A stretch of 63,854 bases of DNA, counting the filler, from Bigelowiella natans CCMP2755 (Eukaryota; Protista; Cercozoa): assembly GCA_000320545.1 (NCBI GenBank). It is 9 parts of 9 records of this genome, joined end to end, with 100 filler letters (N's around TTAATTAATTAA, not from the genome) between each part and the next. Parts side by side here need not be neighbours in the genome. Positions count along the whole stretch, not along the records: positions 37,331 to 54,244 come from ADNK01002870.1; 8 more parts are not named here. The stretch is one strand, 5' to 3'. Under the pieces are notes generated by a model. The model was given only the letters and a program-made list of their open reading frames with translations, was not told the DNA's origin and did not search any database. The first letter of the stretch is position 1. The number at the start of each line of letters is the position of its first letter. Positions 50,226-54,244 of the stretch are shown here, one piece after another. A program made the translations under genes and the position numbers.

Positions 50226-51078
50226 CTAGGTGAGCTAGATAGGTGCCAAGTCTAGAAAGAGAAGGAAGCTTGAAAAAAGTATGCAAGTGATGATGCATTG
50301 TGTGTGCGGTCTTGTCGTCTTTGCGTAACAAGGGTCTTTTTAGACAGAATCAGCTAGCCAGGGAATGCATGCTAGCATGCTGGCACGCGAAAATCTGGCA
50401 TTGCTAGATTGCAGCGATGCGATGTTTGGCCCAGCGAACATTGCATGCTAGATTGTGGAAGTCAAGTCTCTCTCTAGCTCTGATCAGCAACGTCCCCCAC
50501 CGCTTCCTCTGTCCTTCTTCTTGATTTTTGTAGTCAACCTGCCTACAAGAAGAATCGAGCAAGTGAATTCGCTGATCTAGCGATGATTAGCCTATTACAC
50601 AGAGCGCATTGCAGCGGGTTTTCATTTGTTGCCACGGATTGTCAAATCATTCAACACATGGTGACTGTGTGATGCGGTCGTCTAGCAGCGATATGTACAG
50701 TGACGACTGAATCTTCTAGTCTTGAAATTGTGATTTTGTGCATCATGCTGGACCAGCTTTTGAATGCACACTACTACTAGACTAGTGGCATGCTAATGCT
50801 AGCATGGCTAGTTGGAGCGCATGGCAGCAGCAACAAACTGATCTAGAGATGCAACATGCATGAGCGGTGTCTGCGCATGCTAGCTAGATCGCATAGCTCT
50901 AGGACTACATCTAGCTAGCTACACATTGCTAGATCTAGAGATTAGAATAATCGTTGAAAATGTTTGTTCCACTCGGTGCATCTGCATGCTAGCTAGCTAG
51001 CATGTTTGCTAGCTCGTGAAGTTGCAGTAGTACTAGCTAGCTAGAGTTGCGTGCATACATGCACATCTAGCTAGACAT
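50226..51078. other. Dense cluster of XXXX-(CTAG)n-XXXX scars in the convergent intergenic region
   Basis: About 30 CTAG in 860 bp; 8 exact 4-bp flanking duplications plus several 3/4 matches. Confidence 0.92.
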
Positions 51079-51312
51079 GCACATGCCAAACCAGCAAAAC
51101 ATCCAAAAAATGTTGAATAAAACCCTTCTACTACAACTACTACTACTACTGCTACTACCACTACTACTGCCACTACTACTGCCACCACAATCACACCACT
51201 TCACTAGGAGACCAACAGATTCAGCATTAGCGCTGAAGCCGCTGCATTGCACTGCTACATGAGGATGGATGACCATTGGACAATTTTAATTTGATTGATT
51301 ACATCCGTTTTA

Positions 51313-51585
51313 CTAGCACTTCGAGAATGGTGCCGCAACTGGCTCGCCAAACTTAGCATGGTGCCACGCATCATACGCATCATACACCGGGCGAATGGTG
51401 AGGTGATGGAGGTAGTTCTCGCAGCCGTAGCACCAGAAGGACAGGTCTCCTAGGCACATTGCAATCTTGTGCCCTTTCTCATTTGCATACTTCAGCATGC
51501 ACGCCTTCGCGTAGCGCCCGCAAAATATCTCCTTGGTGGCTGATGTGATTGCAGTGTTGGGTGATATAATTAAAAATATAATATT

Positions 51586-51631
<46 letters not shown>

Positions 51632-52158
51632 CATGTTTATGTTTACGTGCGTGTGTGTGTGTGTGCGCGCGTGTAAATATATGTACTGATATTGATACAC
51701 GTACAATTTCTTTAAAGTTTATTTAGAAACTGTGTGTGCGTGTGTGTGCGCGTGTGTGTCAGACGAAGTTTAAGTCATCCTGATGGTCTCTCGGCGTTTT
51801 CGCTACGTCAAGAGGCATGTCGCATGAGTTGTAGCTAGATGGGCGAGTCGTCGCTAATCAATGCTCTGAAGCTTGGTAGTAGTACCCATACACACCCACA
51901 GGTCCTTTTCCTCACAGTGACCGCACTTTTGGCACTTGAGATCCTGATATAGCAGCTTCGCCTCCGACGGGTTTATCTGCGGGTGATGAAGTTGGCAGAA
52001 CGGTAAGTATGGCTTCTGTGCCTCGCTGCTGCTACGAGAGATCCTAGCCCCCCCCCCCCCCCGAATCGAACAGATATATGATATAGTGATAAAAAAGATA
52101 ATATGTAGTAAAATAATGAAGGAAAGAATGAAAGCTGTAGGCTAATATGAACCCTTTC

Positions 52159-52199
<41 letters not shown>

Positions 52200-52966
52200 T
52201 TATATATATTGAAAAAAAAAAAAAACATTTTTTGCCAACGGTGATGCTTGCTATGACGCTCAGAGCACGAAGCTGCTAGCCTCAGGATTCAAAAACCGTC
52301 GTCACCCCCCTCTTCCCCCCACCCCCCCCAAGTGCTCTAGGGCGTGCACACAGAAACGCGCTGCGAAGACGACCTCGAGGTCGTCTTCGCGGAAAAAGTC
52401 TCCACCTTTGCAATGTTAGTGATAGCATGCACACACGAGTGTAATGCGGGGGCATAGCCACCGATATCACCAGAAGACGAGATGTCATTAATGCAGCCAG
52501 CGCCGGCATCGTCCACCTCCATCTTCTTCTTGCTGGCCTTGCCTTCCTCCTCTGCTCCGCAGCTGCTGGCGACGTCTCCCTTCTGCCCTTTCACTTCCCT
52601 CTTGCTACCTGCCTTCACCGCATCTCTAGGGGACGAGGAGGGCCCCGCCTCCTTTGCAGCAGCAGCTGCTGCTGCTGCTGCTTTGTATAACTTATATGCT
52701 CGGAGAGCGATGGATCCCCCCCCATCCCATTGCTCAACAGCTTTTATCCATGCCTTCGGAATGGCCTCAAGCCCGTAGATTGCTCCTGCAAGCTGCCCGA
52801 CTACAGCACACACGGAGTTGGAGTCGCCTCGCATGTTCGCGCAGTAGAGCATGGCCTCTTACGGGGCGCGTTTAAAGGAGGGAGGGGGGGGGGTGGAGAG
52901 GTGGGGAATAGTGTGTGCATGTGCGCGTGAGTATGTGTATAGGAGGGAGGGAGAGGGGGAAAGAGA

Positions 52967-53001
<35 letters not shown>

Positions 53002-53418
53002 TAATATGCGCTTGAACTTCGCCGCGAAGAAAACCAAGTAATCGGTAGTTTCTGCTTCACTCCATTTTCCCCATCACCTCCTCCCCCCACTCCTAGTCCT
53101 CCTCCGCGAGGGCTACACCCTACCTTGGCCGAGGAGGTGTGGTAGATGCAGTGCAGGCTCATGGAAAGATTGTCCATTGCGTACGATCCCACGTAGCCGG
53201 GCATTTGGTAGGCGCGACCGGGCGCGTATTTAAAATCCTTCTCCTTCCAAGTCCTGGGGAGGGGAGCGAGGAGACCGAAGTCAATGATGACAGGAAAGAG
53301 GAGAGGGGGGGGGGGGGGGGGGGTTAGGCGGGGTTGCTGTTATTATTTGATGTTTCAGTACCGAGAGCTAATTAAGTCCGGTCTTTACATAATTCATGTG
53401 TGTGTGTATATATATGTA

Positions 53419-53459
<41 letters not shown>

Positions 53460-53651
53460 GTGTGTGTATGTGTGTGTATGTGTGTGTGTTGTTGCTGTGT
53501 ATATGCATAATTACCAATTTCGGTCTGTAAGATCCAGGTCCTCATTGGCCGTGCATCGCTCTTCCTTCTTCCCCGCTGCAAGGCAGGTCACGCTGTAGAG
53601 CTCCGAGGTGAAGGTTGAGGGGAGAGAATCTAGAAGCTTCTTCGCATCAAC
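51313..53651 (-). CDS. ADP-ribosylglycohydrolase-family protein with probable C-terminal ZnF-UBP domain; 5' half not found
   Basis: PGYVGSYAMDNLSMSLHCIYHTSS, NMRGDSNSVCAVVGQLAGAIYGLEAIPKAW; then KCQKCGHCEEKDLW, IFCGRY, GHKIAMCLGDLSFWCYGCENY...KFGE. Confidence 0.75.
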
Positions 53652-53899
53652 CTGCTTTCAGGAAGAAGACCCGATAACAACAACCAGGGTAGATACCAAC
53701 AGTAAAAGTGAGCCGCAGAGTCATTCTTGCTTTTTGAACGCCATCGTTTGAGGAGGAGGAGGAGGAGGAAGAGGAGGGGGAAGAGGGGGATGGAGGGGGA
53801 GGAGGAAGAGAAGTGCTGCCCCCCTCTTCTCTCTGCATTGAACAACTTCTCCAGTGTCCTCGTCTCCCTGAACGTCACTTCTGCTTGGGGAGCGGGGGA

Positions 53900-54244
53900 A
53901 AAGTATCTACGACTTGTTGGCTATGCGGTGTTCATCGCCGGCTTCCGATATAACGACGGGGAGTCCACCCAGTACATGGGCACACAGCGTGCGGGAGACG
54001 TGATCGATGTCCATCTTGACATGGACTCGCGCACGATGCGCTTCAGCCTAAACGGCGTCGACTGCGGCCCCGCATTCACCGACCTTCCTGAGTCCGTCCG
54101 CCCGGCGATTTCAATGCAATTCGCTGAGACATCGTGCCACGTGCTCAGCAACCTCGACGCGAAGACGGAACAAGAGAACAGGGCGAAAATCCATCGAGGA
54201 GGAGATCGACACTATCATGTTCGAGCAAAAAGGGGACTTGGAAG
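53900..54244 (+). CDS. SPRY-domain exon, partial
   Basis: GDVIDVHLDMDSRTMRFSLNGVDCGPAFTDLPESVRPAISM matches the SPRY consensus. Confidence 0.8.

Follow-up and report, generated by a model that had tools for sequence, protein, structure and literature searches.

Genes and scar-rich regions in the window

The window is a stretch of 63,854 nucleotides from Bigelowiella natans CCMP2755, and all positions below count along it. We analyzed the 16.9-kb piece at 37,331 to 54,244 (ADNK01002870.1). An exon on the - strand (40890-41363) matches a B. natans JGI protein model at 99% identity and a protein from the B. longifila transcriptome at 71% identity, so the piece is chlorarachniophyte nuclear DNA. 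It is intron-rich, with exons of the NHL, transglutaminase-like, ankyrin, PhyH-like, zf-UBP, ADP-ribosylglycohydrolase, and SPRY types. Exact-protein look-ups of ten open frames gave no match, and an Rfam search of the piece found nothing.

The piece carries short marks, which we call scars, of the form ABCD-CTAG-ABCD: an insert of 8 bp, made up of CTAG and one copy of a 4-bp target. Most of them lie in two hotspots. The hotspots and the genes beside them are as follows:

43985-45318, + strand: ankyrin-repeat gene, with its stop codon at 45316-45318, directly upstream of hotspot 2
45371-46225: hotspot 2, which was absent from the initial annotation's list
48021-49316, + strand: exons of a PhyH-like Fe/2OG dioxygenase (identified from a weak match, E = 0.02, and motif reading), the left neighbor of hotspot 1
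50226-51100: hotspot 1, with 25 CTAG runs: eight with exactly matching flanks, six with a single mismatch, and none with four
51316-51534, - strand: last exon of a zf-UBP gene, with its stop codon at 51313-51315, the right-hand convergent neighbor of hotspot 1

Hotspot 2 begins ~55 bp past the ankyrin stop codon and extends toward a probable - strand gene at 46587-46943. The 3' end of the PhyH-like gene is uncertain; the initial annotation predicted a stop codon at 50220-50222. Given the strands of the neighboring genes, both hotspots are probably convergent 3' intergenic regions. The interval at 39717-40890 is likewise probably convergent, and it contains only one scar. Apart from matches of scar length, no homology was seen between the two hotspots, so a single repeat in two copies does not account for them.

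The scars

All eight of the exact scars that were initially annotated in hotspot 1 were found again at the same positions:

50368-50379: CATG-CTAG-CATG
50400-50411: ATTG-CTAG-ATTG
50470-50481: CTCT-CTAG-CTCT, in CT-rich surroundings, and the weakest of the exact cases
50712-50723: TCTT-CTAG-TCTT
50773-50784: ACTA-CTAG-ACTA
50931-50942: AGAT-CTAG-AGAT, nested within an older ATTG-CTAG-ATTa scar
50985-51004: CATG-(CTAG)3-CATG, a nested scar in which the 4-bp target of the second event was the first CTAG
51063-51078: ACAT-CTAGCTAG-ACAT, a variant with an 8-nt filler and exact flanks

The three scars with 3/4 matching flanks that had been named were found as well, and one probable decayed scar lies at the edge of the hotspot:

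50354: TCAG/CCAG
50577: TGAT/CGAT
51033: AGTA/AGTT
51087-51098: CAAA-CCAG-CAAA, probably a decayed scar

Scar sequence accounts for roughly a quarter of hotspot 1. In five of its six one-mismatch scars (50354, 50577, 50799, 50808, and 50843), the mismatch is at the first base of the duplication, and the differing base is the one directly after CTAG, on the right side. These first-base mismatches could reflect a 3-bp duplication with a 5-nt filler in some events, or they could be due to chance. An apparent 109-bp local duplication in hotspot 1 was set aside because it was produced by the CTAG runs.

The remaining scars lie in hotspot 2 or are isolated:

45701, 45725, 45743, 45791, 45905, and 46045: six exact scars in hotspot 2
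45371, 45399, 45502, and 46214: four scars in hotspot 2 with CTGG or CCAG as the core
38677-38688: CAGG-CTAG-CAGG, between NHL-like open frames, probably in an intron
40392-40403: AAAG-CTAG-AAAG, which breaks up a purine-rich tract in the 39717-40890 interval
44590-44601, + strand: CGTG-CTAG-CGTG, inside a repeat unit of the ankyrin gene, in a coding exon

Hotspot 2 also has four one-mismatch scars. Just three exact scars (38677, 40392, and 44590) lie outside the hotspots. There are about 17 scars per kb in the hotspots, as compared to about 0.3 per kb outside them. The high local density that was originally described is ~65-fold above the rest of the piece.

Flanking repeats are specific to CTAG and are exactly 4 bp

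The scar signature is real, and the statistical support for it is overwhelming. Of the 76 maximal CTAG runs in the piece, 17 have an exact direct repeat of 4 bp on their two sides, where ~0.3 to 0.8 would be expected by chance (binomial P = 3.5e-25, with a per-site expectation of 1/256). When the left and right flanks were permuted among CTAG sites (20,000 permutations), the mean number of exact matches was 0.82 and the maximum was 6. Permuting within each hotspot gave means of 0.9 for hotspot 1 and 0.5 for hotspot 2, as compared to 8 and 6 exact matches that were observed.

We also used other tetramers as the core. Among the 23 control tetramers were the palindromes GATC, CATG, AGCT, TGCA, TCGA, and TTAA, and each control had just 0-3 cases with exact flanks. 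In particular, CATG, TGCA, and AGCT, which are the other palindromic cores that are common in the hotspots, do not have such flanking repeats. When all tetramers were tried as the core, only microsatellite cores (TATA, ATAT, and GGGG) ranked above CTAG.

The length of the duplication is strictly 4 bp: flanking repeats of 3, 5, or 6 bp were found at no CTAG run in the piece. Its sequence varies, with 15 different tetramers among the duplications, most of which lack TA and none of which is TTAA. Where tandem duplications of 4 bp occur in the hotspots, most are (CTAG)n, (CATG)2, or (AATG)n runs.

The piece contains 84 CTAGs, and 32 of them are inside 50226-51078. In the two hotspots together, the numbers of CTAG runs with 0 to 4 flank mismatches are 14, 10, 8, 6, and 0, while random flanks would give 0.4%, 5%, 21%, 42%, and 32%, respectively. 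No CTAG run in the hotspots has four flank mismatches, instead of the 32% expected. Judging by this spectrum, nearly every CTAG in the two hotspots looks like a scar or a decayed scar. Outside the hotspots, and setting aside the three exact scars, the mismatch spectrum is close to random.

One scar is a derived 8-bp insertion

The scar in the ankyrin gene can be compared to its empty site. The repeat unit that begins at 44573 (44573-44679) is 107 bp, while four paralogous units in the gene are 99 bp. In an alignment of the five units, the 8 extra columns correspond exactly to CTAG and a single copy of CGTG, and every paralogue has gaps there. When these 8 bp are removed, the unit can be read as a normal ankyrin repeat; when they are present, there is a frameshift, which accounts for the two overlapping open frames. 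Because the paralogous units lack the 8 bp, we conclude from this alignment that the ankyrin scar is a derived insertion and not ancestral. The initial annotation had taken the scars to be inserted, and had held that this would fail if the CTAG array were ancestral sequence. At this one scar, the 99-bp paralogues show insertion, and an ancestral origin fails, as the 8 bp are gapped in all of them.

We did not find a Bigelowiella protein that spans the ankyrin scar within the length range searched. The frameshifted gene may be a pseudogene or an allele that is specific to this assembly. The scar at 40392, which interrupts a purine tract, gives weaker support for an insertion of the same kind.

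Nesting and decay

Some later events landed inside older scars. One round of removing scars in silico turns CATG-(CTAG)3-CATG into the simple scar CATG-CTAG-CATG, as expected if the second event took the first CTAG as its 4-bp target. Similarly, 50929-50946 can be parsed as two events (AGAT-CTAG-AGAT into the older ATTG-CTAG-ATTa), and 45930-45949 as two events plus one substitution. These three cases bear out the nested re-targeting that had been proposed from (CTAG)3. A bias of (CTAG)n toward odd n, which was proposed along with it, is not seen: n is 2 in four runs and 3 in two runs. Nor can ACAT-(CTAG)2-ACAT be the product of a second 8-bp event, which is impossible given that its filler is 8 nt; a variant footprint fits better.

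The scars also form a decay series, with 17 exact scars, 12 one-mismatch scars in the piece (versus about 3.6 expected), and six exact 4-bp repeats around CTGG or CCAG, each one transition away from CTAG. Of these last six sites (45371, 45399, 45502, 46214, 49866, and 51087), five lie within the hotspots or next to them, which makes them probable old scars. In their cores, the central TA has undergone an A:T to G:C transition; cores with the opposite change, from G:C to A:T (TTAG or CTAA), were not seen in the piece. This one-way decay may reflect a directional bias in mutation or repair, in a small sample.

Probable excision footprints

We think that the scars are probably footprints left by the excision of a cut-and-paste element, one that duplicates a 4-bp target and has self-complementary ends of the CTAG type. 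A duplication whose length is fixed but whose sequence varies implies that DNA was cut with a 4-bp stagger and that the gaps were then repaired, as happens with a transposase or integrase. The constant CTAG cannot be derived from the flanks, since bases from a hairpin would differ from target to target and the ankyrin site has no template close by. CTAG must therefore stem from the inserted DNA. That the author was a transposon, the sequence of its ends, and the annealing of its overhangs are what we infer from these patterns.

In this model, integration would proceed via a 4-bp staggered cut and would duplicate a nearly arbitrary 4-bp target, with a weakly palindromic preference for c|MNNK|g. 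The termini of the element would read CTAG, or CTA...TAG. Upon excision, a few bases from the element would stay on each flank as a single-stranded overhang. Because these overhangs would be self-complementary (CTAG, or TA within CTA/TAG), they could anneal and be ligated, which would leave the two target copies separated by exactly one CTAG. If both ends were instead filled in and joined bluntly, the rarer CTAGCTAG form would result. Repeated insertion and excision would then give about 15 recognizable events per 0.9 kb in the two 3' intergenic regions. Clustering could arise if insertion favored certain regions or if a resident copy repeatedly re-inserted itself at very short range. Either of these would give clusters without the locus-directed activity that had been suggested from the density of scars, so such activity is not needed.

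Several observations fit this model. Among 23 reconstructed target sites, which is a small sample, C is at position -1 in 10 and G follows the duplication in 11, while G is at position 1 of the duplication in just one site and C is at position 4 in just one. This weak symmetry may reflect a dimeric enzyme. The ACAT-CTAGCTAG-ACAT scar fits with the retention of two CTAG ends. Overall, the footprint model is the simplest account of the uniformity of the scars, the variant, the nesting, and the decay series.

Other observations weigh against footprints. At about 17 per kb, the events are packed far more densely than is usual for footprints, and the insert is more uniform than is typical of repair by end joining. 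Also, probable intron sequence is almost free of scars, even though 8-bp insertions should be neutral there. Under the footprint model, a strong regional preference must therefore be assumed. The donor element itself is hypothetical: when we searched the 16.9-kb piece for an intact or truncated element, with CTAG ends or with any inverted ends plus a 4-bp duplication, we found only microsatellites and chance pairs. We know of no described superfamily with 4-bp duplications that has CTAG ends.

Alternative explanations

We considered whether the host itself might have made the scars, by a region-directed break-and-repair process with a 4-bp stagger, duplication by fill-in, and a fixed CTAG filler, but no free element. 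Such a process might involve a domesticated transposase, or a topoisomerase II-type enzyme that acts at convergent gene ends. Trapped topoisomerase II causes 2-4-bp duplications. De novo duplications of this kind arise in yeast top2 mutator alleles and in a cancer indel signature that is linked to TOP2A, and topoisomerase II breaks are enriched where transcription converges. These duplications resemble the scars in that arbitrary sequence is doubled by a 4-bp staggered break with a symmetric cleavage preference. A host process would suit the location of scars in two probably convergent 3' intergenic regions, where they are ~65-fold enriched, as well as the duplication of exactly 4 bp and the lack of a visible parent element in the 16.9-kb piece. 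The symmetric preference for C(-1)/G(+5) also resembles the cleavage preferences of topoisomerase II. However, filling in a 4-bp staggered break yields ABCDABCD, with no spacer. The duplications due to topoisomerase II are directly tandem, while here a constant CTAG separates the copies, and we know of nothing that adds a constant CTAG. The 39717-40890 interval, which is also probably convergent, carries only one scar. Furthermore, one scar is in a coding exon and another is in a probable intron, so the scars are not strictly confined to 3' regions. We consider a host process of this kind unlikely. That the scars record host-controlled breaking and joining at convergent 3' ends, which deposited a fixed CTAG and in which later events preferred earlier scars, seems just as doubtful. 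Another route to the same end product begins with an element, which is then lost by microhomology-mediated deletion between CTAG direct repeats (4 bp) at its termini, with one CTAG left behind. CTAG is a palindrome and might also be a terminal direct repeat, but deletions at 4 bp of homology are rare and imprecise, so their products would not be so uniform. This route also leaves the CTAGCTAG variant and the very high number of events unexplained, and we view it as quite improbable.

It is very unlikely that the CTAG-rich sequence is ancestral or under selection (for instance, as a motif-rich terminator or as a decayed (CTAG)n or GCATGC-type repeat), with the matching flanks as a by-product of low complexity. 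Tandem Repeats Finder (TRF) did report arrays in the hotspot 1 region, at 50367-50385 and 50984-51014, but there were only two of them, both short and low-scoring, with periods of 8 to 16. The composition of the hotspots is odd (rich in TG, CA, and GC), and the CTCT scar does lie in a CT-rich run. Yet the flanking repeats differ between scars (15 tetramers), and permutation within the hotspots yields just 0.5-0.9 exact matches on average, versus the 6 and 8 observed. Also, the palindromes CATG, TGCA, and AGCT are without such flanks, the ankyrin scar was demonstrably inserted, and the hotspots lack homology to each other. An artefact of cloning, sequencing, or assembly is hardly credible. Nothing specific points to one, except that the 8-bp insertion in the ankyrin gene disrupts its reading frame. 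Artefacts would not explain nesting or the decay series of mismatched flanks and mutated cores, and no library method that we are aware of creates a 4-bp duplication along with CTAG.

We rejected four other mechanisms by reasoning. Hairpin (P-nucleotide) footprints would have a filler that differs by target. Templated insertion by polymerase theta would require a nearby CTAG template, which the ankyrin site does not have. Severely truncated LINE insertions would vary in both their lengths and their duplications. An 8-bp duplication of a target that contains CTAG would place another CTAG after the right flank, and there is none. Finally, a microsatellite or head-to-tail tandem repeat does not fit with just two low-scoring TRF arrays in the hotspot 1 region and with flanks that vary by scar.

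Comparison to known transposons

The scars are most easily compared to the footprints of Tc1/mariner elements (Tc1, Sleeping Beauty, and Mos1), which also consist of a short constant insert, derived from overhangs of terminal bases, between the copies of the target. The uniformity of Tc1/mariner footprints arises from the pairing of the two overhangs, and we propose the same here. However, Tc1/mariner elements duplicate TA and leave CAG or CTG, whereas these scars have a nearly arbitrary 4-mer and CTAG. The TA duplication is absent, so the scars are not from members of this superfamily. Also, no element was identified here, and the local density is far higher.

PiggyBac elements share the 4-bp stagger, a palindromic tetranucleotide, and the re-ligation of complementary 4-nt overhangs. 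But piggyBac inserts only at TTAA, and its overhangs are the duplication itself, which makes excision seamless. In these scars, both copies of the duplication remain, along with CTAG. None of the duplications is TTAA, an 8-bp scar remains, and TTAA cores lack flanking repeats. As with hAT elements (Ac/Ds) and other plant transposons, the duplication is kept after excision, and footprints build up in noncoding DNA and occasionally cause frameshifts in genes. However, hAT elements have 8-bp duplications and variable, hairpin-derived footprints, with no constant filler.

Full-text searches of the accessible literature found nothing on CTAG footprints with 4-bp duplications, nor on such marks in Bigelowiella. 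A search of viral contigs with the 20-mer of the nested scar gave no match, and a metagenome scan with the zf-UBP exon found only distant relatives (38-46% identity), without scars.

The B. natans genome is thought to be poor in transposons, and to our knowledge, Rhizaria is a supergroup with almost no mobile-DNA biology. If the scars are footprints, then B. natans would have a very active cut-and-paste element, with a pairing of a 4-bp duplication and CTAG ends that has not been reported. Given that scars make up about a quarter of hotspot 1, this element would have reshaped the 3' intergenic DNA, and it could break genes, as with the frameshift in the ankyrin gene. The scars are a ready-made and datable record of insertion preference, which makes chromatin accessibility, local hopping, and the repair of double-strand breaks testable in Rhizaria. 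If there is no such element, then the signature would point to an unknown process of DNA breakage and repair. Eight DDE transposase genes have been reported in B. natans (PMC12730881).

Composition of the hotspots and of the piece

Both hotspots are depleted in CpG: the ratio of observed to expected is 0.6 in 45330-46230 and in 50226-51078, compared to 1.0 in the rest of the piece. TG and CA are enriched 1.4-1.9 in both. The loss of CpG along with the excess of TG and CA is the expected signature of long-term cytosine methylation and deamination. TA is scarce outside CTAG in both hotspots, accounting for 21 of the 53 TAs in hotspot 1. This scarcity is all that the piece shows in regard to the link between the scars and TA erasure that was hinted at initially, and that link is conjectural.

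A (CTA)n/(CTACTACCACTA)n microsatellite at 51128-51185 separates hotspot 1 from the zf-UBP stop codon. It contains CTA but not CTAG. Together with 51020-51036, it makes up imperfect inverted repeats. Elsewhere, the noncoding parts of the piece include four runs of 15-19 G or C (at 42256, 43143, 52048, and 53305) and six (TA)n arrays of 18-36 units (at 37492, 39222, 48466, 51576, 52162, and 53407). [AT]n repeats were reported to be largely absent from B. natans (PMC12730881), and the six long arrays sit oddly with that statement.
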